Of a DNA stretch of 64,000 nucleotides, positions 31,191 through 52,173 are shown one piece after another. Below the pieces are notes generated by a model. That model made no database searches and had not been told where the DNA came from. It saw only the letters and a list, made by a program, of their open reading frames with translations. The stretch is from the sequence record NC_042013.1; one strand, 5' to 3'. How positions within the stretch are numbered: the first letter of the stretch is position 1; every line of letters begins with the position of its first letter. Made by a program: the position numbers and the translations under genes.

Positions 31191-32111
31191 TTAGTCTCCT
31201 GAACACGCTACTCTAAACGAATTTTCTAAAAATCCTTGCATTGTACCTTGAATAGTATCGGTGTTTTCAAGAATATCAGAAAACGTTTCAAATGACATGT
31301 TATCAACGTGGGTTTCACGTACAATATTAGCAAAAACTTCGTATGAACAGCATGTTTTTGCTTTTATAAAGTTGCAAATAAATTGATCATCACCATCAAA
31401 ATATTTGTCTGCGGTGAATTTCAAAATATCAATTGGATGTTCATTTGGGTATTTAATAAAGGTGTTCGTCATTTTCCAAACGATGTTGCTCAAATCTAAC
31501 GTTGTACGTGGTTCAGAAACCGCCACAGGAGGCTGTACAATAGCAAGAACAATAGATTCGGTCAATACGTTATCAACGATCTCAAGCCCTTCCTTGACGA
31601 TCTTAGCCGTAGCAATAGGGCTTTTAATTCCACGTGGCATAAGTTTTTTATCAACGAAGTCGTCATACATTTTTTGACTTGCTAACATTGTTTTACTGTT
31701 AGAAGACATGTATGCGATAATTTTGAAAGATTCGATGTCATACTCGGTGCATCCACCAAACATTTCTTTTGGTTTCCAACAATTTTCTTTGAAAACTTTT
31801 ATTGCTTCAGACTTTTTAGGAAAACCAAGCATGACTTTATCTTCATCATACTTTTTTCCATCAGACGTTAATTGGTGAATTACGTATACTTTAGAACCCT
31901 CAACTGGTTTAGGACGAACCCATACGTCAAGATTTTCACCATCCGGTGAATTGGTTCCTAAAATATATCCATATGTTGCCGTGACTTTACGACGCCATTT
32001 TTCCCCAAGATGATTAGTACCAGAGCGGTATGTTCCAGCCTTATCTTCTATAGAAATATCCAGACCATCGAATTTTAATTTGCCAACGACCTTACCCTCG
32101 AATACGATCAT
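31191..32111 (-). CDS. Inorganic-pyrophosphatase-like (InPase-type) domain protein
   Basis: YGYI.GT..PDGENLDVWV and DEDKVMLGF match the family I PPase YG..P.T...DGD.LD / D.K.I layout. Confidence 0.7.
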   Translation of the reverse strand: MIVFEGKVVGKLKFDGLDISIEDKAGTYRSGTNHLGEKWRRKVTATYGYILGTNSPDGENLDVWVRPKPVEGSKVYVIHQLTSDGKKYDEDKVMLGFPKKSEAIKVFKENCWKPKEMFGGCTEYDIESFKIIAYMSSNSKTMLASQKMYDDFVDKKLMPRGIKSPIATAKIVKEGLEIVDNVLTESIVLAIVQPPVAVSEPRTTLDLSNIVWKMTNTFIKYPNEHPIDILKFTADKYFDGDDQFICNFIKAKTCCSYEVFANIVRETHVDNMSFETFSDILENTDTIQGTMQGFLENSFRVACSGD

Positions 32112-32522: not shown

Positions 32523-34838
32523 TTAAAACTCCATACTTCCACCAATCTGACGGCCATTCTCAAAAGATGCAACCGTGTCGTCACTCATCCAATCGGTTAC
32601 GATGAATTTTGATCCAACTTTATCAACGTGCTGAACATATCCGTTCTTTGAATCGTCTTTTGCCCACTTAGCGGCTTCTGCAAAAGAATCAGCGCGATAA
32701 TTAAAAGTTTCTTCTAATTTCTTGCCTTTTTCTTTCTTAGCTTCAAGCCACATTGGTCCTTCAACCTGCTTACCTTTTTCAAAGGTAGCAACGGTCTTTT
32801 TCTTATCATAGAATTCAGAACCTTCGTAATGTTTACCAACAGCATTCACATAAGATTTCTTTCCTTTACGTGAACGGGAAATTGCCCAATCAGCAACTTT
32901 TTGAAAATCAGTATTTGAATACTTTTCAGTTTCATTTGTTTTATCTGATTTCTGCGCAACTTCTTCGGTAACTTCAGGACCGCATTCTGCAAGGCGCTCA
33001 GTAACGGTTGCAAGACGGTTGTAATATTTTGATTTCAGGCTTTCGTCTGTATCATTTTCTTCCATCTTAGCAATAGCTTTTTCAAGAGCTACTTTCTTTG
33101 ATTTGAGCATATCCTCGGTGCAATTACGTTCAGATACGTAAGTATTTGAAGCGGTTACACCATTGATTTCATAACCTTTTTCCAAAGCTTCTTTAAACCA
33201 TTTGCGTGCTTTATTGATATCGCCAAATTCCTTAGAACCTTCGCGACCTACTTTGGTGCTATAGCTAATGACGATATCCGATACGTTTTCTGGATTTTCG
33301 AAAATATCAAGCTTATCAGTGATATCCGCATTGTCTTCTGAAAGAACCGGATTTAATGATTCTTTACGGGTAATACGAACTTCATCAATCTGGCAACCAT
33401 TTGCAACCAACTTGTAGCTTTCACGCTGTGCACGGTTCATTGCTTTAAATTCACGATGACCGAATTTGCCAGCAGGAGTCATGTATGTGAAATATACATT
33501 GTCAACTTTCAACGGATCGCTATAATCTTCTTCGTTTTCTGACAATGTTGCTTCACGAACAGCTACATCTGAAAGAACATCACGATAGTGGGATTCTTGC
33601 AAAAGTGGCTCGGAGTTGGTGATAAAATCTGATACCTTGTCACTAGTTTTACCAGTGCTTTTAATTGTATTTTGAATTTTCTTTACCGTTAGGCGTTCAG
33701 CAGGCGTCATGCTTGTGGTAGCCGCAGTCATTGGCTTGTTGCCAAGATTTTTGTCGGTTTCCATGCTGGAAGCAATTTTAGCCATCACGTTACCAGCTTC
33801 TTTTTTTTCATTATTATTAAGAGGCTTCAAAGGAGAAACCGGCTTAACGGGTTGTGTATCCTCTGTAAGGTCAGAAGGATTTAGATTAGCCAATGGATTA
33901 AAAAGCTGTGCCGAAAGACCAGCGCCGTATTTCTTTTGACCAATCCAGCCAGCCAAATCTACTGGATTTGTATTTTTAGCTGCTGCAACGTCTGCCATTA
34001 ATTTTTCTTTTTTATCAGCAGGCATTCCAGATGTAACATTTTCATTTAACCAATTAACCAATGAGTCAACGGATTCTGTCATAAGAAGAATTGTTCCAAT
34101 TTTTCTATATGAACCCAAAACCTCGTTATTCAAAGATTCGCGAATAGCTTTAACCTTATTGCGAAGATTGTCTTTACGTGCAACTGACTTGGATTCTTTA
34201 ATAGTTTTGTTAATCGTACGGATTTGTTCTAATGAACGATTAACAGATTCTACAAGAGCGGTCTTGTTAAAAGAGCGGGATTCTTTCTGTGCGCGTCCAA
34301 GCGGTTCCGCCGCGCCAAATAAGTCGTCTTCCTCGATGTCTTCTTCGTTTTCGTCACCGTCCTCGGTATCGTCAACAGCAATTTCGGATTCATCTTCAAC
34401 ATCAACCGAAATATCTAGATCGTCGCCATCCTCGAAAGATGACATATCGTTATCAATCTCTTGGACTTCTTTTCCTTCAAGAGAAAGGATTGCGTTACCA
34501 ATTGCATCTTTTGATTTACGAATAACGTTAAGGCTATCCAATAAGGAATCGGTTGTTGTTCTTTCCCAATTAGCAGAAAGTTCTGGACCAAAAGAGCCTT
34601 TGATATTATCGGCAATAGGAAGAACGTCCGCTTGCATTTTAGCAATATCGCCAGCAATTCTCTGGAGCTTGTCTTGGATGTCTTTTGCCGCAAAAATAAG
34701 TTCAGCTTGTTCTAGATTGTTTTCAAGAAGTGCGCTAATACGGGTAGACTTGATAGAATGTTCAATAAGCTTTTCACGCTTTTGAACTGCCTCATCAAGT
34801 TGTTTTTTGATTTGTTCGATTTTCTTCGCTTTACTCAT
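32523..34838 (-). CDS. Probable prohead scaffold/core-like protein
   Basis: Coiled-coil N-terminus, long acidic tract, many L/V-x-E sites, duplicated C-terminal modules; function is inference. Confidence 0.6.
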   Translation of the reverse strand: MSKAKKIEQIKKQLDEAVQKREKLIEHSIKSTRISALLENNLEQAELIFAAKDIQDKLQRIAGDIAKMQADVLPIADNIKGSFGPELSANWERTTTDSLLDSLNVIRKSKDAIGNAILSLEGKEVQEIDNDMSSFEDGDDLDISVDVEDESEIAVDDTEDGDENEEDIEEDDLFGAAEPLGRAQKESRSFNKTALVESVNRSLEQIRTINKTIKESKSVARKDNLRNKVKAIRESLNNEVLGSYRKIGTILLMTESVDSLVNWLNENVTSGMPADKKEKLMADVAAAKNTNPVDLAGWIGQKKYGAGLSAQLFNPLANLNPSDLTEDTQPVKPVSPLKPLNNNEKKEAGNVMAKIASSMETDKNLGNKPMTAATTSMTPAERLTVKKIQNTIKSTGKTSDKVSDFITNSEPLLQESHYRDVLSDVAVREATLSENEEDYSDPLKVDNVYFTYMTPAGKFGHREFKAMNRAQRESYKLVANGCQIDEVRITRKESLNPVLSEDNADITDKLDIFENPENVSDIVISYSTKVGREGSKEFGDINKARKWFKEALEKGYEINGVTASNTYVSERNCTEDMLKSKKVALEKAIAKMEENDTDESLKSKYYNRLATVTERLAECGPEVTEEVAQKSDKTNETEKYSNTDFQKVADWAISRSRKGKKSYVNAVGKHYEGSEFYDKKKTVATFEKGKQVEGPMWLEAKKEKGKKLEETFNYRADSFAEAAKWAKDDSKNGYVQHVDKVGSKFIVTDWMSDDTVASFENGRQIGGSMEF

Positions 34839-36356: not shown

Positions 36357-36602
36357 ATGGGTGAGGTTATTAAGACAGTCTTGGCCGTACTGAATGGTGG
36401 CGGTTCAGAAGCGGTCATAGCGTTGCTTCTTATAATTGTAGCTTACTTAGGCTATAGTAATTATAGACTGCAACAAGATTTTAGAAATAAAGACGAACGC
36501 ACCGACAAGGTGGTTGAAGACTATCATACAAGTAATAGTATCTTGACTGAAGCAATTCAACGTTTGAATCAGTTGATATCAGAAATCAAGAATAAATTAT
36601 GA
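36357..36602 (+). CDS. Small single-pass membrane protein with coiled-coil tail
   Basis: Hydrophobic AVIALLLIIVAYLGY segment, then a charged helical C-terminus. Confidence 0.7.
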   Translation: MGEVIKTVLAVLNGGGSEAVIALLLIIVAYLGYSNYRLQQDFRNKDERTDKVVEDYHTSNSILTEAIQRLNQLISEIKNKL

Positions 36603-38209
36603 TGAAATGGTTTAAGAATAAAAAAGATATTAAGAACAAAGAACTCGATGAAAAAATAAAATCGAGTACGAGTCAGCTTGTCGAAGCCGCCAACATTACT
36701 ATTAGTCTGGCAGAAGAAATTACGGATGCTTTAAAAAATAGTATTGAAGATTCTTATAAAGAATTAAGTGCTACTGTTGAAATCATACCAGACGCTATTT
36801 TTATTGTACGTCGCTCAGGTATCATTGAAAGTGCTAACTCCCAAGCAAAAAACTTATTTGGGATAGAGGAACTTCTGCCTGAAACTTCCATTTTCGATTT
36901 TATAAGCTTTAATAGTACCAAGATTAGAAATACCGAAGAATTAGAAAAAATATCTACGGTTATTAATGAAAAATTAACATTTTCATCTGATACCGATGTT
37001 CACAATATTCGTGGTAAAACCATTGATGGTAAAACTATTACGTTGAAAGTAAAAGTTAACTATTTCAAAAAATCTGATAAAATTGTCAGATATGTTGTCT
37101 TAATGGAAAATATAACGGATCGAATTGAACAAGAAAAACGATTCGTTACTCTTTATAATTATAACAATGGAATAATATCAGCTATACCACAAACATTGAT
37201 TACCGTCGACATGGCAGGGGTTATAAAAAGCATTCATAATAAAGGATCATTTATCGATATCTCTTTTATGGATAAGAACATAACAGATGCATTTGATGAA
37301 ATATTAGTAAAACAATTTCGTCATTTCAAAAAGAATCCGATGGTTTATAATAATTCACAAATACACTTTACTAAAATAATAGATGGAATCGAGAAAAACT
37401 ATACATCTAAAATTTTGGAATGTCAGTCCGAAGCCTTATTTGTTATTTCAGATATTTCGGAGATTGTAGAAACAAAAAGAGAACTAGATCAAACCGAAGA
37501 TTATTTCCGCGCTTTTGAAAAAGCATCATCAGAGGCGATGTTCATTCATATTGACGATCAATTGATTCGATGGAATGATAATATGAGAAATCTTTTTGGT
37601 TATAGTGACGAAGATATGGAAACTCTTAGACCTGTTGATTTTATTACACCTCTTGACCGTGCTAAATATTTGTCAAATATTTCTGATGATGAAAATAAAT
37701 CATATGAAATATTAATGGTCAATAAAAAAGGTGATTCTATTGAAGCTTCAGTTACTGATAACATCATTACTTGGAATGATAAAAAAGCACATATCAAAGT
37801 TATTAGAGATATTAGCGATCTTACCAACGTGAAGAAAATGCAAACGGTTAGCCGCGAGCGCTATGCGACTATTATGAATAACACTATTGACTTGGTATTC
37901 AGTCTTAGTGAAAAATTTGAATTGAAATTTTCAAACGTTACTTTTGATCAATTTGTTGGTGAAGGAAAAGTACATTCTGTTATTGATTTTATTGATAGCC
38001 GTGATTTGGCACGTTTCATCGGTGATTTCAGTAACCTTAAAGACCCATCAACCGCTATACGTATCCTAACACGTATTAACAGAACCGGTATCGTTCGTCA
38101 TATTGATATTATTGCAAATCGCATACATGATGCTGAAGGAAACTTCGTTGAGTATCAGTGTGTTGGACGTGACGTTACATATTATATTGCAAAATCTTCC
38201 AAAGAATAA
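36599..38209 (+). CDS. Multi-PAS-domain protein with no output domain
   Basis: Four PAS/PAC-like units: IIPDAIFIV..ANSQAKNLFG; AIPQTLITVD; SSEAMFIH..WNDNMRNLFGY..IRDISD; NTIDLVFSL..VGRDVT. Confidence 0.82.
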   Translation: MMKWFKNKKDIKNKELDEKIKSSTSQLVEAANITISLAEEITDALKNSIEDSYKELSATVEIIPDAIFIVRRSGIIESANSQAKNLFGIEELLPETSIFDFISFNSTKIRNTEELEKISTVINEKLTFSSDTDVHNIRGKTIDGKTITLKVKVNYFKKSDKIVRYVVLMENITDRIEQEKRFVTLYNYNNGIISAIPQTLITVDMAGVIKSIHNKGSFIDISFMDKNITDAFDEILVKQFRHFKKNPMVYNNSQIHFTKIIDGIEKNYTSKILECQSEALFVISDISEIVETKRELDQTEDYFRAFEKASSEAMFIHIDDQLIRWNDNMRNLFGYSDEDMETLRPVDFITPLDRAKYLSNISDDENKSYEILMVNKKGDSIEASVTDNIITWNDKKAHIKVIRDISDLTNVKKMQTVSRERYATIMNNTIDLVFSLSEKFELKFSNVTFDQFVGEGKVHSVIDFIDSRDLARFIGDFSNLKDPSTAIRILTRINRTGIVRHIDIIANRIHDAEGNFVEYQCVGRDVTYYIAKSSKE

Positions 38210-39444: not shown

Positions 39445-39487
39445 CGTTTCGATGTTTTTGTTATACACGAAGGAGAAATAATGTCAA
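39445..39487 (-). promoter_or_regulatory. Diverged copy of early promoter
   Basis: TTGACA-N16-TATAAC...CATCGAAACG; left arm of the inverted repeat lost. Confidence 0.72.
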
Positions 39488-41820
39488 GAATTTTTCTTAC
39501 GTTTCTTTGCGAACTCGTAAATACCCCAATCGCCATCTGGATCAAAGCCTACACCAAGACCGCCTACATTTCCATTTGTTGTAGCAACGTTACCTGCTCC
39601 GGTTGATCCAGCGGAGGACGTTTCAGTAATAGGCACTTTTTTTAGTCTAAAGAAAACAGAACGTGGTAGATTATTCTCTTGTAATTCGTATCCTAAATCT
39701 TTAAATTCAGCCGCAAGTTTTTTACCCATTGCTGAATATAGTTTTGCAAGTCCATTAGATTTATCGCCTACAAAAAACAACATGTCAGGCTTGTTATCAA
39801 CGATGTATTTTTTAATGCGATTTTTAACAATTCCTAATACTTTGGGAGCATCTTTTAATAATGTATTGGATGGTTTAAATGACGAACCTTGTTTGTCATC
39901 ATCTGGATTAACGAACCCATAATCAACTTCTACATATCGTGGTGATGGCGTGAAACGAAGGAAATAATCAATTCCATTAAACGTGAAATTACCCTCGTCG
40001 TGTTGTATAGTACCACCACCGGGGTCTTTGCGTTTCCCTTGTTTAAGATCAATATCTACTGACGTATCAAATAATTCGTTTAGATTATTAGTAAAATGAT
40101 AAAAACGTTCCCCGTGCTTATCAACAATATCAAGCTTCAAATTTAGTTTTGCCGCAAGTCTTTTTGAAAGAGCATCATATAACTTAACACGTGAATAATC
40201 GTCTAAATTCGCCGCAAATTTATATGGAGGAGTGAATTTTGATTTAATGATATTGTATACAGCAGAAAATACCTTGACTGAATTATTCCACAGGTTCTTT
40301 TTATCAAAATTTTTATTGGAATCATCTCCAGCCAAACTGAATAAGATTTCATCCCCTGCAATCAGACGAATATTGTACGTAATACCATCAACAGTGAAAT
40401 CATATCCGCGTGTAGCGATAGTTGTTTCAACTTCTGTATCAAATAATTCGGTCAAATTCTTTTGACTATTAATCCATTTTGACGCCGCAGGTGATTTGCT
40501 TGGCGAATTAATAAACGAATCTATACGTTTCGCTACTCCATTCAAATCTAATTTCGTATTGCTACTATCAACAATGAATAGATTGTTTCCAAAATAGTTC
40601 TGAAAACGGCCAAGGTTGGCCTGTGTTTGCTTCCATATCGTTTCAACAACATCAGGTGCAACTGTTCTTGAACGCTTGCTATTGCGTTCTATGGCCGTTT
40701 CCATATCGGTGTTGACGAATAACAAACCGGTATCATATCCTAACTTTTTAAGGTCGTTTGATAAGGTAATGATTTTATCATAATTACGACCGGTTCCGTC
40801 AATGACAAGAGGGAGTCTTCCATCAAGGTATAAATCCAATTGAGATTTATTAAGACTATGAGCTTTTGATTTAACGTTCCTATCCCAAGAATCCATGTTT
40901 TTAAGATCAAGGTCATTCTTTGAGGCAAGAAATTCTATAAATCGATCAACGTTTACCTCTTTGAAACCCTTGTGCGCCAAAAGTTTTTTAGAAATGGTTG
41001 TTTTACCAGAACCGGGACCACCGGCAGTAAAAATAGCCTTAAAAATGTGCTTGTCATTTACACCCTCGGTAACCTCGGATGTATTGGAAAACATTGGAAC
41101 GATTTCTTTCAAATACGTGTCCGATTTAATAAACAACACGTTCCCGCTCATCCACACTTCACGATTATCAGGTATACTTGCGACGTCATTAGTTATCGTG
41201 AAACCGTTTTTAGAAGGCTCCATAAAATCTGCATATGCTTTCCATAGATTATCGCCGCGTCTGAATCCAATATAGTCGATGTCATATGGAATTTTGATAT
41301 TTTGGTGCGTTACTAATGATTTGCTTATTTTATCCAAATCGTCTTTAAGTGCACTGCTGTTAGACGAGCTAAGCGGTATACCTGTCTCTCGTGATAGATC
41401 ATAAAGAGCGCTATTAATGTCAGCAGGGCTTGGATCACCAAAGGATTCCCAAAAATCAATTTCAGAACATACACCAATTGACTGATGTTCTAAAGGAATT
41501 ACTACATATAAAGAGCCATATCCAATAGACCTATTCAATGAGGTTGAACATATAAAGGACTTAGAACGTTTAGGATAATTACTCCACGCCGGATCGGCAT
41601 CAACAATTAATGTATAATAATTTTCGGTGTTGGCAGAACGACGACTAATCTCATTACCCGTTCCAAGTACGTATGCTCCGGTATCTTTCATACCACGATA
41701 TATAGGATTATCTCCACGAGTCTCCACATATGATTTGATAACGTCATGGTATTTCTTTAAAACACCATTACCATCAACAACGTCATAACCTGTTGCTTCG
41801 TTAAGATCATTCCATTTCAT
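39484..41820 (-). CDS. Array gene 1: ART-like (type A) + P-loop kinase + two Alt-N-like modules (polyprotein-like)
   Basis: MKWNDLNE; PIYRG, FICSTS, NREVW; AGGPGSGKT and LVIDGTG; linkers VTEG, LTELFDT, LNELFDT, ITET. Confidence 0.75.
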   Translation of the reverse strand: MKWNDLNEATGYDVVDGNGVLKKYHDVIKSYVETRGDNPIYRGMKDTGAYVLGTGNEISRRSANTENYYTLIVDADPAWSNYPKRSKSFICSTSLNRSIGYGSLYVVIPLEHQSIGVCSEIDFWESFGDPSPADINSALYDLSRETGIPLSSSNSSALKDDLDKISKSLVTHQNIKIPYDIDYIGFRRGDNLWKAYADFMEPSKNGFTITNDVASIPDNREVWMSGNVLFIKSDTYLKEIVPMFSNTSEVTEGVNDKHIFKAIFTAGGPGSGKTTISKKLLAHKGFKEVNVDRFIEFLASKNDLDLKNMDSWDRNVKSKAHSLNKSQLDLYLDGRLPLVIDGTGRNYDKIITLSNDLKKLGYDTGLLFVNTDMETAIERNSKRSRTVAPDVVETIWKQTQANLGRFQNYFGNNLFIVDSSNTKLDLNGVAKRIDSFINSPSKSPAASKWINSQKNLTELFDTEVETTIATRGYDFTVDGITYNIRLIAGDEILFSLAGDDSNKNFDKKNLWNNSVKVFSAVYNIIKSKFTPPYKFAANLDDYSRVKLYDALSKRLAAKLNLKLDIVDKHGERFYHFTNNLNELFDTSVDIDLKQGKRKDPGGGTIQHDEGNFTFNGIDYFLRFTPSPRYVEVDYGFVNPDDDKQGSSFKPSNTLLKDAPKVLGIVKNRIKKYIVDNKPDMLFFVGDKSNGLAKLYSAMGKKLAAEFKDLGYELQENNLPRSVFFRLKKVPITETSSAGSTGAGNVATTNGNVGGLGVGFDPDGDWGIYEFAKKRKKNS

Positions 41821-41840: not shown

Positions 41841-41847
41841 TATTTAT
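41841..41847 (-). promoter_or_regulatory. Putative late promoter (ATAAATA) for array gene 1
   Basis: Overlaps the stop of array gene 2, about 20 nt before ATG 41820. Confidence 0.45.
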
Positions 41848-43316
41848 TTGATAAGATCATTAAGATATTTCTGATCAAACACAAGTAGTTTACCGGAAAC
41901 CCATACTTCCTTATCAACCGGGATATTGGTTTTTTTAGTCAATTCAAACCCGTTACGTTCAGGGTTAATGTAGTTGACGTACCAGTCGAAAATGTTCTGG
42001 TCGGAGGGAATACTAAGTTCTGAATATAATTCGTTTACTGCCGGGTTATCGCGGTAGCTAGACAACGTAATAAAATCATCTTTCATTTTTTCAAAATCAG
42101 TTTCACTGATTTTTATACCTACGTCATTTGCGGCAGCGAATATCATATTGTTAATCATGTCGATTGGGTTGCCATTAATTTCAGCAAACGATGCCCATAT
42201 ATCACCTTCAGGGCATACACCAAAATCTTGATTTTCAAGTGGAACAACTACATATGTTTCACCAGCCGATTCAGCATAATATTCAACAACATCCAACGAT
42301 GATCCGCATATCAATGATTGTGAGCGTTTAGGATATGCTGACCATTCTGGAAGATTATCGATCATTAATGTATAATAATTCCGACCATTACGGCTTTTTC
42401 TTTTTATATCACCGGTATTAAAAATGGTGTAACCGTTCTCTTGCGGTTTCATACCACGATATATAACTGGACCATTTTCTACAATCTTCTTAATTTTTTC
42501 TTTGTTTTTAGTCAAAAAATCTGGAACATTGTCTAACGGTTGTGGTGATGTATTATTCCATTCGGAGCGAATCTTTAAAAATACAGCAGCATCAAGTGCA
42601 ACATACTTTCCACCTGAAATCATTATTTCGTTTTTAGAACGAATAGCTTCCTCGAGATTAGTTGTTTTGTATAGTTCATTGATCTTCTTTGCAAGATGTT
42701 CTTTATCAAACGCCAACCTACTTAGAACAGACGTAATTTTGTTTTCAGGTATCTTGTTTAGCCAACCCAATATTGATGATGCAGTTGAAATCAATTTTTT
42801 ATTAATTTCTTTTAGCGAGAATTTCTCTGGTAGTTCTTGTAATTTGTTATTATTAAACCATGAAAGGTCGTCATGGGTAAGAACTTTTTTGTTGTCGTTT
42901 TTAAACTTTATGAATCCATTCGAGTATAAGTATGTTTTAAAGTTATAAAGATCACGAATAGATGGTGAATACGAGAATGAAAAATCGCCAATGGGAAAAA
43001 TAACATATACTGACCCATAACGAGTTGCGTCTCCAAGATCACCGGTACAAAAAATACTATTATCTCGATTCGACTCTATGCCAGCGGCTTTAAACCCCTC
43101 AATGAAAACATTATGGTAGAACGGAGATGAATCTACCGATTGTCTATCAGTACGGATATTCTTTATCAAATACTCAGAATCTTCGCGCATACCTCTATAT
43201 AGAGGTAGTTTTAGAAAATTTGGATTTTCAGACAAATACTTTTTGCAATGTGTATTGATATATTCTATGATGTTTGAAACATCTAAGTCGTTTTCATTAA
43301 GCTGTTCCCAACGCAT
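41844..43316 (-). CDS. Array gene 2: tandem ART-like domains (type B + type A)
   Basis: ATG 43316 MRWEQLNE; PLYRG/IFCTG/NEIMI then VIYRG/LICGSS/KEVW. Confidence 0.72.
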   Translation of the reverse strand: MRWEQLNENDLDVSNIIEYINTHCKKYLSENPNFLKLPLYRGMREDSEYLIKNIRTDRQSVDSSPFYHNVFIEGFKAAGIESNRDNSIFCTGDLGDATRYGSVYVIFPIGDFSFSYSPSIRDLYNFKTYLYSNGFIKFKNDNKKVLTHDDLSWFNNNKLQELPEKFSLKEINKKLISTASSILGWLNKIPENKITSVLSRLAFDKEHLAKKINELYKTTNLEEAIRSKNEIMISGGKYVALDAAVFLKIRSEWNNTSPQPLDNVPDFLTKNKEKIKKIVENGPVIYRGMKPQENGYTIFNTGDIKRKSRNGRNYYTLMIDNLPEWSAYPKRSQSLICGSSLDVVEYYAESAGETYVVVPLENQDFGVCPEGDIWASFAEINGNPIDMINNMIFAAANDVGIKISETDFEKMKDDFITLSSYRDNPAVNELYSELSIPSDQNIFDWYVNYINPERNGFELTKKTNIPVDKEVWVSGKLLVFDQKYLNDLIK

Positions 43317-43317
43317 A

Positions 43318-44088
43318 TCAAATTCCCTCAATATCAAGTAATGCAGTGTCTTTTAAAAATAGTACGTTACCAGAAACCCATACCTCATTATCATTAAAAT
43401 CAGAAGGCACTTCGCTATTAAGTAAGAAATTATTAGTGGTTGGATCAAGTAATTTGGAAATCCATTCGAACGTTTTGCCGGGATAATCCATCATTGAAGT
43501 TCCGAGCCAACGATATTCCTCTGAGAAATATTCTTTGTAAGTATCGTCGCCTTTTTTCTGTTTATCAATAAACGAAAATGTTTGCTTTAATGCGGTTGGT
43601 GAAAGTGTCCAAGGTGAATCGTACTTATCCCCTATACCTTTCATTAATGTATATGCGTCGGCTAACATATGAGCAAATGAATTGATTGATTGCCCACCAG
43701 ATTCGATTGTGAAATTAAAAGATACCCAAAAGTCCGACGCTTGACAAATACCATACTGTTGACCCTCTAATGGTATAACGTGATATATTTCGCCATATTT
43801 TCTTGCTTTGGCAACTGATGTAGTGCATATAAATGATAACAAACGATCAGGATATGCGTCCCAAGACGGTAACATTTGATCGATAATAGTATTAGGGTAT
43901 GAAAATGTATTAGCGGATTCGCGTCGTTTTTTTGGATTACCGACAATCAATGGTCCAGTATCTCTCATACCACGATAAACAAAGCGCCCTTTATTAACGT
44001 AGGATCGAATTATATCGTGATATTCGGTTGGGATATTTTCAAAATTACTATACCAATCTGATTTTTCAGTAAGTTGTTCCCAACGCAT
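43318..44088 (-). CDS. Array gene 3: ART-like, type A
   Basis: MRWEQLTE; VYRG, FICTTS, NEVW. Confidence 0.72.
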   Translation of the reverse strand: MRWEQLTEKSDWYSNFENIPTEYHDIIRSYVNKGRFVYRGMRDTGPLIVGNPKKRRESANTFSYPNTIIDQMLPSWDAYPDRLLSFICTTSVAKARKYGEIYHVIPLEGQQYGICQASDFWVSFNFTIESGGQSINSFAHMLADAYTLMKGIGDKYDSPWTLSPTALKQTFSFIDKQKKGDDTYKEYFSEEYRWLGTSMMDYPGKTFEWISKLLDPTTNNFLLNSEVPSDFNDNEVWVSGNVLFLKDTALLDIEGI

Positions 44089-44089
44089 A

Positions 44090-44884
44090 TCAAGTATCCT
44101 TTTTAGAATATTTATTATTCATAAGGTCTTGAAATTTATCATTATGAATGAATAATACTCTATCAGATAACCATACTTCGTTTTTTCCAAAATGGGCGGT
44201 ATCTATATTAGTTGTAACTTCGAAACCATTTATGTCTGGATCAAAAAGATACGTTAGACCTTTCCAAACGCCATGTTTTTTGAAATATGCAAACATATCG
44301 TTTACTTGCTTAATATCATACCAATGATCACGGTTTAACGCATCAAATTCTTCTTGTGATGTGTTTTTCACATACGTTTCAAGCATATCCATAACTGATG
44401 AAACGGTTTTTGGATTTTCAGGAAGGTATTGGTCTATTGTATTTCTTAGTAATTCTTGTAAAACTTGATTGAACATGTTTAAAGAACGTAAACCAATTTC
44501 GTTGATGCTTTTGAAACCAAACCAAAAATCCTCGGCAGGGCAAATACCTATTGGCTGTAAATCCAATGGGATAACAACATATAATCGTCCATAACCAAAT
44601 GCTACCGTTGAATCTGTTGTGCATATAAATGATTTAGATCGCTTAGGATATGGTTTCCATTGTGGTAAAAAGTTATCTATAAGCGTGGTATAGAAATTAT
44701 ACGTGTTTTTTGATTTGCGTTCTCCTGTAGAACCATTACCGATTATATATGGGGACGTTCCTTTCATTCCACGATAGATGTAATTACCTGATGCGATATA
44801 ATCATCAATGATCGTTTTGTATTTTTCAGGGATTTCGTCTATATTCGTATATGAGAGTGACTCGGTAAGTTGTTCCCAACGCAT
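44090..44884 (-). CDS. Array gene 4: ART-like, type A
   Basis: MRWEQLTE; IYRG, FICTTD, NEVW. Confidence 0.72.
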   Translation of the reverse strand: MRWEQLTESLSYTNIDEIPEKYKTIIDDYIASGNYIYRGMKGTSPYIIGNGSTGERKSKNTYNFYTTLIDNFLPQWKPYPKRSKSFICTTDSTVAFGYGRLYVVIPLDLQPIGICPAEDFWFGFKSINEIGLRSLNMFNQVLQELLRNTIDQYLPENPKTVSSVMDMLETYVKNTSQEEFDALNRDHWYDIKQVNDMFAYFKKHGVWKGLTYLFDPDINGFEVTTNIDTAHFGKNEVWLSDRVLFIHNDKFQDLMNNKYSKKDT

Positions 44885-45663
44885 TATTTGGTTTCCTTAT
44901 GGTAACGTTTTAACTCGGTGTATCTTTCAAACGGTATAGCCAAATATTTATCACCGGTTATCATAATTTCATTACCGGATACAATCGCTTTTACTAAGTC
45001 GGTTGTTTGGTATTCTTTTACTATTTCACTAAAATTAGTGTCTATTCTTATAAGATTTAATTTTGAAAAATAATAACTTATTGATTTTGGAACATTATCT
45101 GGATACAACTTTATCAAATCATTAGTAGAAATATGACCAGAAAGTTTTTCTAATCCTCTATTTTCAGCACGGGCATCTATTGATATTCGAATCGATTCTG
45201 GAAATTCATCAACATTCAATGTTTTGTTATCGGATGGCACAAATTTAGATGCATCAGTTTGGTTATATAATGCAACAGTTAAGTCCCTTATTTCAGGACT
45301 CCACGTATATTCAAAATTTCCCATAGGATAAACAACGTGAACCTCGCCATATTCCTCCGCGTTGTAAGACTCGCCTATGCAAAACATAGAATTAGATCGT
45401 ATAGCCTTGAAACCTTGAGAAATAAATTCTTCGTCCAGTTCTTTTTGGACTTGTTTCGCCGTATCTTTAGGTAAACGATCTTTTCTAATTGTATTAATTG
45501 ATGCAATTGTACTTGGTGTTTTCATTCCTCGGTATAAACGATTTGTCTCAAAATATGGATTTTCATGAATATATGGTCGACAATGTTCATTAACAAATTT
45601 CAATAGATCGCTATATGTTCGAATAGGCGCTGTAGTGCTTTCTGTCAACTGTTCCCATTTCAT
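44884..45663 (-). CDS. Array gene 5: ART-like, type B
   Basis: ATG 45663 MKWEQLTE; LYRG, MFCIG, NEIMI. Confidence 0.72.
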   Translation of the reverse strand: MKWEQLTESTTAPIRTYSDLLKFVNEHCRPYIHENPYFETNRLYRGMKTPSTIASINTIRKDRLPKDTAKQVQKELDEEFISQGFKAIRSNSMFCIGESYNAEEYGEVHVVYPMGNFEYTWSPEIRDLTVALYNQTDASKFVPSDNKTLNVDEFPESIRISIDARAENRGLEKLSGHISTNDLIKLYPDNVPKSISYYFSKLNLIRIDTNFSEIVKEYQTTDLVKAIVSGNEIMITGDKYLAIPFERYTELKRYHKETK

Positions 45664-46418
45664 AACGCAGTATCCTCGTAATATGCTTTTATTTTTCTCC
45701 ATTCTATCATTTGAATGAATAGAACTTTTCCAGATAACCAAACTTCTCTGTCATCTGGAATGGATGATATATCTGTTGTGATTTTGAAATTATTTTTACG
45801 TGGGTCGATTAGCTTCACATAAAAATCATAAAGACTATCACCAATATTGTAACCCATTTCCTCGAAGTCTTTTACCGCCACCACGTGCGGATCAAGTGGA
45901 ATAGATTTCGATATATCGTTAAGATCATTATGAAATTCGTTATAATTTGTTTGTGAAATTGGTCTTTTTAAATAAAATCTTGCTAAGTCAGATATCATAC
46001 GGTTTATTGCGGACGGGAGATTTACAAATGATTCCCAAAAATCCATTGCGGGGCATACACCAATTTCTTGATTTTCTAATGGAATAACAACATAAGGAAC
46101 ACCGAACGCGGATGCGTAAGAATATTCCGTTGAACATATAAAAGATTTAGAGCGCTTAGGATATTCCTCCCAAGACGGATCATTGTCCATAATCAACGTA
46201 TAGTAATTTTCGGTGTTTTTAGATTGGCGATTCATTTTATTCCCATCACCAAATCCAAAAGGCCCAATAGATTTCATTCCACGATAAATCGTTTGTTTGC
46301 CTTTGGCAATAGGTTCTATGACGGGGCCATACTTTTCAAGTAAGGTTTCAATATCGAAATCACCGACCTCATATGCTTTAGAGGTATCACCTTTTTCGGT
46401 TAACTGTTGCCACTTCAT
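45660..46418 (-). CDS. Array gene 6: ART-like, type A
   Basis: MKWQQLTE; IYRG, FICSTE, REVW. Confidence 0.72.
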   Translation of the reverse strand: MKWQQLTEKGDTSKAYEVGDFDIETLLEKYGPVIEPIAKGKQTIYRGMKSIGPFGFGDGNKMNRQSKNTENYYTLIMDNDPSWEEYPKRSKSFICSTEYSYASAFGVPYVVIPLENQEIGVCPAMDFWESFVNLPSAINRMISDLARFYLKRPISQTNYNEFHNDLNDISKSIPLDPHVVAVKDFEEMGYNIGDSLYDFYVKLIDPRKNNFKITTDISSIPDDREVWLSGKVLFIQMIEWRKIKAYYEDTAL

Positions 46419-47218
46419 AAACTATCCCAATCTATTTCTTCAATCGATTCATACCTAATAAACATAACTTTTCCTGAAATCCATACCTCAGAATCATGGT
46501 CGTCTGGATGCTTGCTTAAAGAGAACTTATTTTTAACAGGGTCGAAAATCTGCGCTAATCCTTTTTGAACGTCGCCAGCTTCTTTGAAATATTTATATAA
46601 CGCAAATTCATCTTGAAACGTTTGTAGGTCGTCTGACGTTGATGGAAAAGAGTCGTAATCATAATTCGTTTTCTTAATGGCTTGCGACAGTATTGCCATT
46701 GAATTAAAAAATGAATCTGCGCTCGCCGCCATTATTTCTTTCTTTTTAAGAATATAATAAAGTCGACCTAAAATTTGGTTGAAATAGTGTAGGCTACCGT
46801 TGGAAATGATTTGTTCAAGAGTTTCATCAAATGCATACCAGAAGTCGTCAGACGGGGCGACACCGAAGTCTTGATTTTCTAATGGAATTACTACATACAC
46901 TGTGCCATACGAGCCAGCCGTTGATTCGTGTGTAGTGCATATAAAGCTTTCTGACCTAAGGGGAAATTTTTCCCATTGTCTTCTAAGAATACGGTCAACT
47001 ATATATGTATAATAATTAGTAGTATTTTTTGATTTGCGTGACATCTTCGTGCCATCACCAAAAATGATAGTTCCTGTATCTTTCATACCTCTATAAACGT
47101 ATGATTCGGACATCGTTATATACTCTTTTACAATCCTACGATATTTTTCAGGTATTTCATTAACGATAGAATATCCCTTTTCGGTATCGCCAGCTTCGTT
47201 TAATTGGTGCCATCTCAT
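46415..47218 (-). CDS. Array gene 7: ART-like, type A
   Basis: MRWHQLNE; VYRG, FICTTH, SEVW. Confidence 0.72.
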   Translation of the reverse strand: MRWHQLNEAGDTEKGYSIVNEIPEKYRRIVKEYITMSESYVYRGMKDTGTIIFGDGTKMSRKSKNTTNYYTYIVDRILRRQWEKFPLRSESFICTTHESTAGSYGTVYVVIPLENQDFGVAPSDDFWYAFDETLEQIISNGSLHYFNQILGRLYYILKKKEIMAASADSFFNSMAILSQAIKKTNYDYDSFPSTSDDLQTFQDEFALYKYFKEAGDVQKGLAQIFDPVKNKFSLSKHPDDHDSEVWISGKVMFIRYESIEEIDWDSL

Positions 47219-47976
47219 TTGAATTTTTCTTTCATCTGTTCGAATATATCAGGTTCTATTGCTAAGTATGAAGTCCCGGCTATCATAATTTCGGAACCAC
47301 TTTCAATAGCATCTTCGAGATCATTATTTGAATAATAATTTTTAAAATTATCTATTAATACATTTTGGTCTATTTCCAATTTCTGAAAAACTTCATCAAT
47401 ATCATCTGCACGAAACCATAAACGAAGATTATTGCCTGTTTCTTTAAAAATAACGTCTTTCATATAATTAAATGAAAACTTTTTTGGAACTTTGTAGTCC
47501 CCAAGCTCAGACGGTGACAAGTCAAGATCATCAATTGTTAGAACGTCCTTATCGGCATTTTTAAATGCAATACCACCATTGAGGTATATCGTTGGTAACA
47601 CATTAAGCAAATCACTATATGATGATGACCAAGTATATTCAAAATTTCCTATAGGAAAAATTACCATAGTGTATCCGTATTGGTCCGCTACGCTTTTACG
47701 TCCGGTAACAAACATACTGTTTGATCTACGAGCGACGAACCCTGCTTTTTTTAGAGTGTCATCATATAGATCATGAAAGTACCTTTTCATATCTGTTGGT
47801 TCACGATCTGTTCTAATATTTTTGATAATTATGTCTTCACTATCAGATATCCCTCTATATAATGGACTATTCATCCAATCGGGGTTTTCTCGTAAATATT
47901 CAGAACAATTTTTCTTAATAAAAGAAACAAGATTTCTTTTAGTAACATTAGCCTCTGTTAATTGATCCCAACGCAT
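47215..47976 (-). CDS. Array gene 8: ART-like, type B
   Basis: MRWDQLTE; LYRG, MFVTG, SEIMI. Confidence 0.72.
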   Translation of the reverse strand: MRWDQLTEANVTKRNLVSFIKKNCSEYLRENPDWMNSPLYRGISDSEDIIIKNIRTDREPTDMKRYFHDLYDDTLKKAGFVARRSNSMFVTGRKSVADQYGYTMVIFPIGNFEYTWSSSYSDLLNVLPTIYLNGGIAFKNADKDVLTIDDLDLSPSELGDYKVPKKFSFNYMKDVIFKETGNNLRLWFRADDIDEVFQKLEIDQNVLIDNFKNYYSNNDLEDAIESGSEIMIAGTSYLAIEPDIFEQMKEKFK

Positions 47977-48752
47977 TAGATCGCCTTTCCATATTTTACA
48001 AATTCTCTAAACAAACGAAGTGATATTGCTAGATATTCTTTACCGGTTATCATTATTTCGTTTTTAGATTCCATTGCTGCATTGAAGTCAGTATCTTGAT
48101 ATGATTTGGCAAGGTCTAACATTTGTTCAGAGCCTTGTAACATATTTTGTTTATGAAAAAATGTTCTTAAATCTTCATTCCAAGCACGATCACCTATAAT
48201 CTTAATTAGTTCGTTTGATGACATGACATCTGGCATTTCTATTCCTTGTTTTTTGAATTCGGAATTAATATAACCTGCTAATGATGAACTCATCTCTCTA
48301 ACGTAAATATTTTTTTCATCGGAAGGAACAATATAAAGCATATCCTTGATGTCGACGGTCAAATCATCAAATTTAGGATTCCACGTAAAATCAAAATGAC
48401 CGATAGGAAAAATAACGAATTCTTTTCCAAATTCAACTGCTGATCCTTGTGAACTTGTACAAAAAATAGAATTTCCGCGTAATGCCTTAAATCCATTTGC
48501 AGAAAGGTAATCATCTATTTGAGTTTGAATTAAATTGGAAGAATCACGTGGTTTTCTATCTTGGCGAATTTGACGTATCTGTATGTCTTTCAATCCAGCA
48601 ATCTTTATTCCACGGTAAAGAGGTCTCTTTACCCAATTAGGATTTTGTTGAACATATTCTTTACAATGAGTGTTGACGTATTCGGTTAATTGTTCTAAGG
48701 TTGTTATATCTTGAACATCCGTAACGGCTTCTGTAAGTTGATGCCATTTCAT
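47976..48752 (-). CDS. Array gene 9: ART-like, type B
   Basis: MKWHQLTE; LYRG, IFCTS, NEIMI. Confidence 0.72.
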   Translation of the reverse strand: MKWHQLTEAVTDVQDITTLEQLTEYVNTHCKEYVQQNPNWVKRPLYRGIKIAGLKDIQIRQIRQDRKPRDSSNLIQTQIDDYLSANGFKALRGNSIFCTSSQGSAVEFGKEFVIFPIGHFDFTWNPKFDDLTVDIKDMLYIVPSDEKNIYVREMSSSLAGYINSEFKKQGIEMPDVMSSNELIKIIGDRAWNEDLRTFFHKQNMLQGSEQMLDLAKSYQDTDFNAAMESKNEIMITGKEYLAISLRLFREFVKYGKAI

Positions 48753-49507
48753 GATAAATCCTCCAACATATCCATATATACGTGATGCTTCAATGCCAAA
48801 TATTTATCGCCTGTAATCATAATTTCGGTGTTGTTCCATATTGCATCGTCAATTTTATCGGTTCTATATAATTCTTTAAAACCGTCAGCGAGATGGTCAA
48901 TATCGATTTCAAGCTTATCCACTAAGCTTTCTTCATTAGAATCTATTAGATCATAAATTTTATACCAATCGATCTTAAAATTTTCATTCAGTTCTTTAAA
49001 AGAAATTTCGGTAATATCGGGAGGAAGATTATCATTTGTTAACTTTTTCGCCTCTACCCTTGTAAGAATAGTATTAACGTTTTTAAAACGAAAAAGGCCA
49101 CGACGAGCAAGGCGTCCGAATGCTGTGTATAAATCTCTATATTCCGTAGTATAAGAATATTTAAAATCGCCTATTGGAAAAACAACATATACATCACCGT
49201 ATCCAATTGCTGCATTTTTATTACCAGTGCAAAAAATACTATTAGAACGGATAGCCGTAAGACCAGCACGTTTCATAGCTTCATCATATACTTTATGTAT
49301 ATATTGATTAGAACTTAACGGTTTTCTGTCTTGGCGAATAGTTTGTATTGAAACTTCACCGCGTGAAGACATTCCTCTATAAAGAGGATAGCTCATAAAA
49401 TCAGGATGTTCTTTGATATATGGCTGGCAATTTTGTTGAATGAATGCCATGATATCATCTGAATCTTTTAATAGAATCTCGTTTTCAATTAGCTGGTGCC
49501 ATCTCAT
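48749..49507 (-). CDS. Array gene 10: ART-like, type B
   Basis: MRWHQLIE; LYRG, IFCTG, TEIMI. Confidence 0.72.
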   Translation of the reverse strand: MRWHQLIENEILLKDSDDIMAFIQQNCQPYIKEHPDFMSYPLYRGMSSRGEVSIQTIRQDRKPLSSNQYIHKVYDEAMKRAGLTAIRSNSIFCTGNKNAAIGYGDVYVVFPIGDFKYSYTTEYRDLYTAFGRLARRGLFRFKNVNTILTRVEAKKLTNDNLPPDITEISFKELNENFKIDWYKIYDLIDSNEESLVDKLEIDIDHLADGFKELYRTDKIDDAIWNNTEIMITGDKYLALKHHVYMDMLEDLS

Positions 49508-50592
49508 CGTTTGATTTCCTTTGCTATATTTTGAAAACGTGTATAATTGCTATATTTAATAGCGATATATTCTTTTCCGCTAATCATAATTTCGCATCCC
49601 GATTTGATAGCAGATACTAAATCGGTTGTTTTATATGTATCTAACGTTTTATCTAATTCTGGATTGTATTTTACTTTATGCTTACGTACCATTTCGACAA
49701 ATATTTCTTCTGGTACATCTTCAGAACTACCATACGCCTTTAAAATGTCGTTTGTTGATACTCGATAATTTTCGTGTTTTACGTCCCTTTTAAGTCTAAG
49801 ACTGAGTTGTTTATAATAATCACTACCAATTACTATTATTCTTTCATCATCTTTTATGACAGTAGATGCCCCTGCAATATTGGTTGTCATATCCAAAATC
49901 TTTGGGTTCCAAGTAAAATCAAATTCACCAATTGGAAATATTACATAGGTATTTCCATATGTATATGGTACATCCGAATCACCTGAACAGAATATAGAAT
50001 TGTCACGATTAGCCTTTATACCGCGATTGCTTAGCTCTTTAACGATTTTGTTATGGGTTTCTAAATCAGTATCTAATGGCTTTCGGTCGGTTCGTATAGC
50101 CGAAACAATGATAGGTTCGGACGAGGAAATACCTCTATACAACGGATTGTTGTTGAAATCTGGATTCATACGCAGATATGGTTGACATTTTTTTCTAATA
50201 AATTCTGCAACATTATTATCATTTAATTCAGCTGTTTCTGTAATAGACCCTTTAGGTAAACGATACATGCCATAAGAGATTGAGAAATCTTTGTCTTTGC
50301 CCTTATTGACAACGAACCCAAAACGTTTATAGAAATCAATTAACCTTGAAACAGAGGTTGTTCCTTGAATTTTTTCAGGAGTTAACAATACGATTTTGTT
50401 ATTTTGATCTGCATAAGCACAGATATATTTCATAAGAATAGAGCCGGTCCCCTCGCCGGGGGTTATGGCTTTAAGCATATGGATAATTATTTTGTCGTTA
50501 CGTTCCGTTACAGAAATAGACAAGCCAAGGTCGCGAGCTTTTGCTTCAATATATGTTTCCTCGGCTGTTTCTAACAATTGAAATAATCTCAT
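49504..50592 (-). CDS. Array gene 11: GNAT acetyltransferase + ART-like type B
   Basis: MRLFQLLE; GEGTGSILMKYI and LIDFYKRFGF (GNAT); ITET linker; LYRG, IFCSG, CEIMI. Confidence 0.75.
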   Translation of the reverse strand: MRLFQLLETAEETYIEAKARDLGLSISVTERNDKIIIHMLKAITPGEGTGSILMKYICAYADQNNKIVLLTPEKIQGTTSVSRLIDFYKRFGFVVNKGKDKDFSISYGMYRLPKGSITETAELNDNNVAEFIRKKCQPYLRMNPDFNNNPLYRGISSSEPIIVSAIRTDRKPLDTDLETHNKIVKELSNRGIKANRDNSIFCSGDSDVPYTYGNTYVIFPIGEFDFTWNPKILDMTTNIAGASTVIKDDERIIVIGSDYYKQLSLRLKRDVKHENYRVSTNDILKAYGSSEDVPEEIFVEMVRKHKVKYNPELDKTLDTYKTTDLVSAIKSGCEIMISGKEYIAIKYSNYTRFQNIAKEIKR

Positions 50593-51377: not shown

Positions 51378-52173
51378 CAGGGATTTCCTCTTTAACATTA
51401 GTAATTCGATCCCAATACAACTTTGCAATTTCAGGGAGACGATCTTTCTGATATTTATTGAGAGCGGCCCATAATGAATCAAAATTATAAAATGCACTTT
51501 CGGTAGCTTCTGGAATAAGCCAGTTCATAACCCACTTCGGGTCATTGTTCATTTTCATCGGAAAATGAACAGGTTCGTATAATTGGCTATATGCCTCTTC
51601 AGTAATAACATCCATACGCTTTTTACGACCTTGGCCGTTTCGTTTCCATTCACGATGTTTGCAAATCCATTCAACACCGGTATCACTATTGAATACGGGA
51701 CCAGCACGAGCTATCAATTCCCCATCCTCAAATACTAATGAGTCTACACGATCTGCCACCATCGCACGAATAAGATTGGTTCTGAACAGACCTTTATGTT
51801 TTCCACCGTCGCTAAAATAGCCAAATACTTGCCATGCATAATTTCCAAACATCAAATCGCATTGAACAAATCCACGCGTTTCATCGCCGCGAATTGGGAG
51901 TTTAGTAAAAATTCTATGATTACCTGCTTGTACCCAAATATTATCCTCAGGCAAGGCTGCTTGTAGACGACTGGCAATCTCATCAAGATCAAATTTTCTT
52001 TCGTCCATATTAACATCAATGTCACCGGACGTTGGTTTCTTTCCACCTGATCCTAATAATGATGTTCGTAGATAATAATTATCAACATCAATTATCTTAC
52101 CCAAATAATTTAATGTTGGATAAATATCTTCACGATTGATACGCTGTGTACCATCAAATGCTCTACCGCCCAT
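51340..52173 (-). CDS. Pol-beta-superfamily nucleotidyltransferase
   Basis: LLGSGGKKPTSGDIDV (hGS..DxD) and third Asp in FVQCDLM; start MGGRAF at 52173. Confidence 0.72.
   Translation of the reverse strand: MGGRAFDGTQRINREDIYPTLNYLGKIIDVDNYYLRTSLLGSGGKKPTSGDIDVNMDERKFDLDEIASRLQAALPEDNIWVQAGNHRIFTKLPIRGDETRGFVQCDLMFGNYAWQVFGYFSDGGKHKGLFRTNLIRAMVADRVDSLVFEDGELIARAGPVFNSDTGVEWICKHREWKRNGQGRKKRMDVITEEAYSQLYEPVHFPMKMNNDPKWVMNWLIPEATESAFYNFDSLWAALNKYQKDRLPEIAKLYWDRITNVKEEIPDDIRIKVQRAMQ

Follow-up and report, generated by a model that had tools for sequence, protein, structure and literature searches.

Is a phage gene that strings several unrelated domains together the source of one working virion protein, or of a chain of separate cargo items that the phage itself cuts apart in its head? 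The question is raised by gp53 of the jumbo phage Atu_ph07 of Agrobacterium, whose gene lies on the minus strand of the 64,000-nucleotide stretch analysed here (NC_042013.1; hereafter the window). The window covers the opening 64 kb of the 490 kb phage genome (MF403008.1), so that coordinates are identical in both, and the product of the open reading frame at 39484–41820 is 100% identical to Atu_ph07 AUZ94865.1. This protein can be equated with gp53 of the published virion list because gp20 (‘internalin’) is AUZ94832 in the genome paper and because the masses agree, 87.07 kDa being computed here and 87.08 kDa tabulated for gp53 (PMC6102473 Table S5). The answer proposed below is that gp53 is probably a head-packaged polyprotein of formerly separate, leader-bearing cargo proteins, cut by the prohead protease at leader sites that the fused units have retained. 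The gene and its parts are as follows.

39484–41820, minus strand: gp53 (AUZ94865.1), an intact open reading frame of 778 codons with no breaks.
41797–41820, minus strand: leader MKWNDLNE, residues 1–8, ending in L-N-E; a putative capsid-targeting and cleavage leader.
41065–41796, minus strand: N-domain, residues 9–252, ending in V-T-E (250–252); N-terminal part of phrog_12810, phrog_11975 paralogue family.
40447–41064, minus strand: P-loop kinase, residues 253–458, ending in L-T-E (456–458); assigned by Pfam Zeta_toxin and AAA_33 and by alignment with T4 Pnk.
40075–40446, minus strand: module C1, residues 459–582, ending in L-N-E (580–582); DUF6934-type, GNAT-like fold.
39622–40074, minus strand: module C2, residues 583–733, ending in I-T-E (731–733); DUF6934-type, GNAT-like fold.
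39487–39621, minus strand: Gly/Ser/Ala-rich tail with a basic end, residues 734–778; a putative C-terminal propeptide.

A sequence-only reading of this locus had already suggested a protease-processed polyprotein, and every string that it quoted is found in gp53: VTEG (residue 250), FTAGGPGSGKT (264), VNVD (289), LVIDGT (338), LTELFDT (456), VFSAV (517), SRVKLYDAL (543), LNELFDT (580), VLGIV (661), GLAKLYSAM (690) and ITET (731), the lid of the kinase being RNSKRSR. Does gp53 then merely abound in [LVI]-x-E tripeptides? Nine of them were observed, as against 6.4 ± 2.2 in shuffled sequences, and enrichment was dropped as an argument because this difference is not significant; the argument is therefore placed on the position of the sites and on their conservation. 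Five of the nine (6–8, 250–252, 456–458, 580–582 and 731–733) coincide with the end of the leader and with the four unit boundaries, so that the earlier claim of such a site at every domain boundary is correct for all four, with placement and conservation rather than number being unusual. The sites at 250 and 456 are retained in all aligned homologues, and those at 580 and 731 wherever that region exists, whereas the non-boundary sites at 237, 391 and 767 are missing from distant homologues and the one at 713 is retained in four of six. The confidence of the AlphaFold2 (AF2) models, given as the predicted local distance difference test (pLDDT), also falls at the junctions, to 44–74 at residues 241–252 and to about 62–64 at both ends of the C2 model, compared with values of at least 90 in the cores, and the linkers at the junctions are thus predicted to be flexible.

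What could these sites be relics of? Because unfused relatives begin at those very boundaries with the same motif, the junctions can be read as the leaders of proteins that were once separate. An [LIV]-x-E-G sequence stands right before the kinase core in six of six stand-alone or N-terminal kinases (HTVC008M, RsoM2USA_254, P0009, P0010, P0011 and P0045), behind leaders of 8–12 residues and with the same glycine as G253 of gp53. Stand-alone relatives of the C-terminal modules likewise carry a leader of 5–11 residues that ends in [LIV]-x-E and is followed by L/I-F-D/N; a start of the type [LIV]-x-E-hydrophobic-aromatic was found in 74 of 101 N-terminal and 111 of 203 internal module copies, the chance expectation being 0.15 per 40-residue window, and the glutamate at the module start is one of only two invariant columns among 41 module sequences. 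As for the N-domain, all 11 array genes from gp53 to gp63 open with a leader of eight residues, the sixth being L and the eighth E, and [LIV]-x-E occurs inside the first 12 residues of all eight N-domain relatives from other contigs; the leader of gp53 itself is modelled with a pLDDT of about 62, against at least 90 in the N-domain core. The leader type is thus common to three unrelated domain families.

The clearest unfused arrangement was found in the 344 kb Ralstonia jumbo phage RsoM2USA, where a gene for an N-domain homologue (hhalign probability 97.4%) lies directly upstream of a kinase gene (31% identity, E 8e-34) and each of the two has a separate leader (L005:4252-5717, RsoM2USA_255/RsoM2USA_254). 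This gene pair corresponds to the N-terminal half of gp53 in an unfused state. A second stand-alone orthologue of the kinase, besides RsoM2USA_254, is that of pelagiphage HTVC008M (AGE60463, L004:3986-4648). The mass spectrometry (MS) of RsoM2USA virions, which covers the most abundant bands only, lists the neighbouring ORF257 and does not mention ORF254 or ORF255.

Orthologues that keep the fusion vary by whole modules, from junction to junction: there is one module in P0003 and P0008 and there are three in P0006. In P0003 (L003:10001-12295, on a 498 kb metagenomic relative), which is 84% identical to gp53 over the 72% of gp53 aligned by BLASTP, the missing stretch is precisely module C1 between its two junctions, an I-S-E site is followed by an extra domain of about 110 residues at the C-terminus, and the rest of the array is syntenic. 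A ParB-like identity of this extra domain was considered and dropped, there being no Pfam match. Across the window, an N-terminal L-x-E is found in 16 of 32 virion proteins as against 11 of 49 others (P = 0.016); most of the positives are paralogues, and for this reason the enrichment is given little weight.

Is there any sign that gp53 is in fact cut? In purified virions, electrospray ionization tandem mass spectrometry identified it by 31 unique peptides that cover 45.5% of the protein, and it was most abundant in gel band 9 (PMC6102473 Table S5). The other proteins that peak in this band are mostly of 17.8–24.3 kDa, with two larger ones of 29.0 and 44.8 kDa, while gp197, an intact protein of 87.3 kDa, peaks in band 1 (PMC6102473 Table S5). 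The computed masses of the predicted gp53 pieces are, in order, 27.2, 23.0 (the kinase), 14.3, 17.1 and 4.5 kDa. Since the band-9 peak corresponds to a mass about four times smaller than that of the whole chain, and since it agrees with the predicted piece of 23.0 kDa, gp53 appears to be cut far below full length. That virions hold only the full-length product, the outcome named earlier as fatal to the polyprotein idea, agrees poorly with a peak at the 18–24 kDa level rather than at 87 kDa, although the small fragments could also arise by degradation.

Two members of the neighbouring array serve as internal controls.

41844–50592, minus strand: array gp54–gp63, N-domain paralogues lying outside gp53 and given here as context; all were detected in virions.

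The first, gp54 (41844–43316, minus strand), consists of two fused paralogue domains, one of the phrog_11975 type followed by one of the phrog_12810 type, the second copy being without a leader; it has no leader-type junction, and it peaks in band 4 as an intact chain of 56.5 kDa would. The other, gp63 (49504–50592, minus strand), has a leader, an extension of about 110 residues, an I-T-E site and then the paralogue domain; at 41.4 kDa it nevertheless peaks in band 8 together with paralogues of 29–31 kDa, its predicted C-terminal piece being one of 28.0 kDa. Both proteins behave as the junction model predicts and so speak in its favour, and gp63 looks like a second polyprotein in the array. 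Its extension has a weak GNAT match (Acetyltransf_7, E 7e-4) that lies below the cut-off. The earlier suggestion of a polyprotein with protease-type junction sites is accordingly supported from two sides, by the comparative evidence and by the published band-level MS of virions.

How might such a protein have come about, and what would become of it? gp53 would have been born by the fusion of genes that are separate in other phages, namely those for an N-domain, a kinase of the polynucleotide kinase (PNK)/zeta type, two DUF6934-type modules and a Gly-rich tail, with each fused unit retaining the end of its old N-terminal leader, [LIV]-x-E. The N-terminal leader would carry the whole chain into the prohead core, and the prohead protease gp204 would cut it after Glu 8, 252, 458, 582 and 733; at least some of the pieces would remain with the DNA and then enter the host alongside it. 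The published homologue of T4 gp21 in Atu_ph07 is gp204 (33% identity), and it is itself present in the virions. In this scheme we infer the protease responsible, the exact cut sites, the ejection into the host and whatever the units do there. The idea that one gene delivers four injected activities stays a conjecture: of the four units in this virion protein, the kinase alone displays a recognisable catalytic signature, and both modules are without the glycine motif of some relatives.

The kinase displays a Walker A motif (GGPGSGKT, 267–274), D292, LVIDGT (338–343) and a lid with R379, R383 and R385. On gp53, Pfam Zeta_toxin scores E 1.5e-14 (54.4 bits against a curated cut-off of 22.3) and AAA_33 scores E 2.7e-10 (41.1 bits against 27), and PHROGs assigns the region to families named ‘ATPase’ and ‘polynucleotide kinase’. 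Its best PDB match is the kinase domain of T4 Pnk (E 1.9e-4), whose K15, D35, R122 and R126 align to K273, D292, R379 and R383 of gp53, whereas a zeta chain in the PDB matches at E 0.1 only; the Walker A motif, D292, R379 and R383 are invariant in eight homologues. Scores above the Pfam cut-offs and the alignment of the catalytic residues with those of Pnk bear out the assignment to P-loop kinases of the zeta-toxin/PNK/AAA_33 type. Among NCBIfam models none reaches its cut-off on this domain, the best, PSTK, remaining far below. By its sequence the kinase is a member of the PNK/zeta/PSTK group, and it most likely acts on a non-protein substrate, such as a nucleotide, a sugar-nucleotide or the 5' end of a nucleic acid. 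No antitoxin-like gene was recognised beside gp53 in the Pfam results and the neighbouring annotation, and Pfam finds no phosphatase or HAD domain in gp53, the alignment with Pnk covering only residues 3–149 of the 301-residue Pnk chain.

Orthologues of the kinase that stand alone behind a leader are found in a T4-like pelagiphage and in Methylophilales phages, at 38–40% identity. Their surroundings say little about function: the large terminase gene adjoins the kinase of RsoM2USA, the neighbour in HTVC008M has a weak cytidylyltransferase-like match, and there is otherwise no functional lead. In the Atu_ph07 cluster, gp66 (52163–53137, minus strand), which is absent from the published virion list, matches RNA ligases weakly (PF09414, E 0.002) and begins in a leader-like manner, with MNTVTLLE and then K-L-D-G. 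A ligase-like gp66 and a PNK-like kinase in one cluster would hint at RNA repair, as far as such sequence matches can be read.

Much less can be said by name about the N-domain, whose paralogue family fills the array from gp53 to gp63, with two copies in gp54. Seven residues are invariant among 20 family sequences (Y41, R42, R60, R85, S88, D122 and E221), and the two core parts have mean pairwise identities of 34% and 29%, compared with 15% for a helical insert spanning residues 124–205. The AF2 model has a pLDDT of 91.9. A Foldseek search of the PDB with this model gave a best E value of 0.4 with no ADP-ribosyltransferase (ART) among the matches listed, and one of BFVD returned uncharacterised phage proteins only, again with no ART; the large helical insert may lower the sensitivity of such searches. 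No ART match was obtained by Pfam among the 20 family members at E values up to 5 or by sequence and profile searches of the PDB, PHROGs gave no match to ART or to Alt/ModA/ModB, hhalign assigned a probability of 0.1% both to an ART-PolyVal protein and to T4 Alt, and none of the 24 matches that a profile retrieved from 5.8 billion proteins was annotated. With sequence, profile and structure searches (Pfam, PHROGs, PDB profile, Foldseek and hhalign) all empty, the ART label that residues 1–252 had been given was dropped.

The modules C1 and C2 had been described as resembling each other and as being akin to the N-terminus of T4 Alt. On the first count they are true duplicates, with 28% identity and a BLASTP E value of 3e-5 in a single comparison of residues 459–582 with residues 583–733. 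On the second, the likeness to Alt is limited to six residues at each module start: a profile of the modules aligned to T4 Alt by hhalign has a probability of 0.2%, and a resemblance to an Alt N-terminal domain was rejected, the cut site being all that the two share. Where, then, do the modules belong? A joint C1 and C2 profile retrieved 193 clusters at E ≤1e-3 from 1.84 billion representative proteins, the relatives being either stand-alone proteins of 130–190 residues or larger proteins with two to five copies. Pfam DUF6934 is matched by 29 of 41 stand-alone relatives and by every multi-module relative tested, whereas C1 and C2 of gp53 themselves have no Pfam match at E values up to 10. Elsewhere, on phage-like metagenomic contigs, larger proteins join the modules to a zeta-type kinase, to ART-PolyVal together with a Pol-beta-type nucleotidyltransferase, or to an amidoligase together with GGACT.

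An AlphaFold model of C2 built on the 41-sequence alignment (pLDDT 86.7) retrieved by Foldseek a consistent run of GNAT-fold structures, including antizyme, PatZ, AAC(6')-Ib, PseH, GCN5 and SpeG, at E values of 4e-4 to 1e-2 and template-modelling (TM) scores of 0.3–0.48. The glycine motif of the G-x-G type is present in 62 of 159 family modules and in neither module of gp53, while the [S/G]-x-x-K-L-Y element is retained in both (SRVKLY and GLAKLY). Pfam gave no match to a GNAT family for the gp53 modules or for the relatives tested. The guess of a GNAT fold for the E-L-F-D modules thus receives weak support from the C2 run and is set back by the low TM scores and the empty Pfam search; C1 and C2 might be regarded, with weak support from modelling, as GNAT-like modules of uncertain catalytic competence. 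The Gly/Ser/Ala-rich tail behind I-T-E, also pointed out before, proved to be a separate conserved unit: its 45 residues contain a G-F-D-P-D/E-G-D-W/F-G element, and it is kept in orthologues down to 39% identity (P0008) and in the otherwise unrelated one-module protein P0050, each time after [LI]-x-E.

Several observations weigh against a processed polyprotein and would suit a simpler view, in which gp53 is one intact multi-domain virion protein, the motifs are fusion relics or structural elements and the low gel position reflects breakdown while the virion sample was being prepared. Peptides of gp53 were found in 11 of 13 bands (2–9 and 11–13), and other virion proteins also run well below their predicted size, among them the large terminase subunit, which at 68 kDa peaks in band 11 (PMC6102473 Table S5); with data at the level of bands, so wide a spread and other low-running proteins, general degradation is possible. 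The [LIV]-x-E-L-F-D sequence is moreover conserved as the first element of the module, where AF2 models a short helix, and in some stand-alone members it sits at the extreme N-terminus with only two to three residues before it, fewer than one would expect of a targeting leader; the sequence could serve as a structural N-cap instead of a cut site. In addition, gp54 holds 14 [LVI]-x-E sites yet seems uncut, from which it follows that the tripeptide alone is no predictor of cleavage, and the specificity ascribed to gp204 is assumed from its 33% identity to T4 gp21. What speaks against an intact protein is that the peak band is about four times smaller than full length and equals one predicted piece, that gp54 and gp63 follow the junction model, and that three unrelated domain families share one leader type while the boundary sites are selectively conserved. 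Taken together, these points make an undivided gp53 improbable in our judgement.

Even if gp53 is processed, are its pieces meant for the host? They and the array might instead be structural components of the inner head, core- or scaffold-like or a filler associated with the DNA, similar to the inner-body proteins of phiKZ-like phages. At least 12 paralogous copies exist, all of them in virions with good coverage; the N-domain has no assigned function; and gp22, gp67 and gp68, core proteins of T4, are likewise cut at several L/I-x-E sites (PMC9026906). A filler would hardly be expected, though, to keep the full catalytic signature of a kinase across homologues down to 31–40% identity, or to combine invariant polar residues with a hypervariable insert as the N-domain does, a pattern commoner in enzymes or target-binding proteins, and relatives of the modules occur in fusions with enzymes (ART-PolyVal, nucleotidyltransferase, amidoligase and GGACT). 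We give a purely structural role only a small chance. Conversely, the N-domain and with it the whole array could be very divergent R-S-E ADP-ribosyltransferases, gp53 being an Alt-like host-modifying enzyme fused to a kinase. R42 (within Y-R-G), S88 (with S/T at position 92) and E221 are invariant or nearly so, stand in the order R, then S, then E, and are placed on strands in the predicted model, an order and placement that we take to recall the R-S-E motifs of ARTs; in addition, there is an S-T-S string before a helix and a beta hairpin after E221, R42 and S88 are 46 residues apart, and on other contigs proteins with DUF6934 either are fused to ART-PolyVal domains that Pfam recognises or lie beside them. 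Against this stand the empty searches described above, the variable residue two positions before E221, which leaves the domain without [QE]-x-E, and the roughly 80 helical residues that separate the S and E elements. An ART identity is therefore doubtful.

How does a processed gp53 compare with systems that are already understood? In T4, gp21 cleaves after L/I-x-E (PMC9026906), Alt is trimmed at both ends, by six residues at ITE-6 and by a C-terminal propeptide of 63 residues at LTE-619 (PMC5694885), and the short leaders of the internal proteins are capsid-targeting sequences (PMC3012670; PMC9026906). As read from NC_000866, Alt starts with MELITELFD, just as the sequence-only reading gave it, and the only similarity between the two proteins is that of Alt residues 4–9 to gp53 residues 456–461 and 580–585, where the LTELFD and LNELFD junctions each match at five of six positions. 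Given that gp21 cuts Alt at ITE-6, two gp53 junctions are near-copies of a proven gp21 site. Like gp53, T4 Alt and IPI-III have a short N-terminal leader ending in L/I-x-E, are present in the head and are served by a phage-encoded protease of the gp21 type, and Alt, like gp53, also has a C-terminal piece behind [LI]-T-E (LTE-619 in Alt, ITE-733 in gp53). Unlike gp53, however, they have one leader per protein, whereas in gp53 the leader-type sites are internal and lie between four units; Alt, moreover, has no similarity to gp53 at the level of domains, and the cleavage of gp53 is proposed rather than proven. No annotated alt gene was found within the 50 kb read of Yersinia phage JC221.

The make-up of gp53, with four units from three unrelated families and a tail, brings to mind the polyvalent proteins, which likewise unite several unrelated and probably host-directed domains in one virion-delivered polypeptide and among whose listed domains is a zeta-toxin-like kinase (PMC5512222, Iyer et al. 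2017). By contrast, gp53 lacks MuF, a peptidase of its own or any other hallmark domain in Pfam searches; where polyvalent proteins have a built-in peptidase, processing by the prohead protease is proposed here. The inner-body and ejection proteins of phiKZ, 201phi2-1 and SPN3US resemble the gp53 array in being many paralogous head proteins, and a gp21-related protease processes phiKZ-type head proteins after Glu, at several places in each chain (PMC9026906), but the motif is S/A-x-E, the families are unrelated, and what is removed there is mostly a long propeptide, whereas separate enzyme units would be released here. With T4 Pnk, zeta toxins and PSTK/KTI12 the kinase of gp53 shares an aligned Walker A motif, catalytic Asp and lid arginines; unlike it, Pnk has a 3'-phosphatase domain and an R38 with no aligned gp53 residue, and, unlike AAA_33-type kinases, that of gp53 is preceded by a leader-type site and carried in the virion. 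The modules can be likened to DUF6934 proteins, since DUF6934 is found in their relatives, and to GNAT proteins, whose structures the C2 model retrieves, but the gp53 copies differ from these in having no Pfam match, TM scores of 0.3–0.48 and no G-x-G-type motif. What gp53 seems to do, and here we are somewhat more inclined to believe than to doubt, is to pair the targeting-leader logic of T4 with the make-up of a polyvalent protein; a head protease acting as the separating device would be new.

What would be the significance of such an arrangement? If the junction model is true, leader-type [LI]-x-E, whether N-terminal or between units, would be a sequence rule for capsid-delivered proteins that applies to the T4 superfamily and to jumbo phages; Pfam DUF6934 would gain its first biological context; a virion-carried P-loop kinase would be conserved from pelagiphages to jumbo phages; and there would be a route to polyvalent proteins via the head protease and not via a built-in peptidase. 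One may go a step further and imagine the [LI]-x-E-L-F-D-type leader as a portable targeting-and-cleavage cassette across the T4 superfamily, from T4 Alt through marine T4-like phages to jumbo phages of 0.3–0.5 Mb, which lets the protease separate independently evolved cargo strung on one chain, with the DUF6934 modules (193 clusters, many of them with two to five copies in a protein) and the kinase as large capsid-delivered classes that have so far escaped notice and the 12-copy N-domain array as delivered enzymes of a fold new to the PDB. This broader proposal is a tentative one, and we lean slightly against it. In any case, the array gp53–gp63 is a family with a confident predicted structure and no solved relative, and hence a good target for structure determination.

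A few features around the gene deserve mention. Other virion proteins of Atu_ph07 with a low gel position include gp44 (32523–34838, minus strand; 86 kDa), which peaks in band 10, and gp42 (31191–32111, minus strand; 34.6 kDa), a ‘mega protein’ called InPase in a relative, which peaks in band 11; many proteins of this phage may thus undergo proteolysis during head maturation. An abundant virion protein, gp67 (53224–53943, minus strand; 16 peptides, 67% coverage), is weakly matched, below the cut-off, by LPD3 (E 0.0038), which is a domain linked with large polyvalent proteins. Immediately downstream of gp53 and on the opposite strand lies gp49 (36599–38209, plus strand), a protein with a PAS domain that carries the annotation of a sensor histidine kinase and whose position beside gp53 is held in relatives down to 39% identity.

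Finally, when would gp53 be made? The gene had been said to have its own upstream ATAAATA, and the element is indeed there.

41841–41847, minus strand: ATAAATA, a late-promoter-like heptamer 21–27 nt upstream of the gp53 ATG, overlapping the gp54 stop codon.

Across the window the heptamer is rarer than expected (22 copies against 35), and 15 of the 22 copies lie no more than 100 nt upstream of a start codon on the same strand, compared with 13% for heptamers of the same composition. Examples are the sites at 12767, 26324, 26345, 38743, 41841, 44109 and 54519, and many copies precede virion genes. Judged by this distribution, ATAAATA behaves like a T4-type late promoter core across the window, and its presence upstream of gp53 suggests that gp53 is a late gene.

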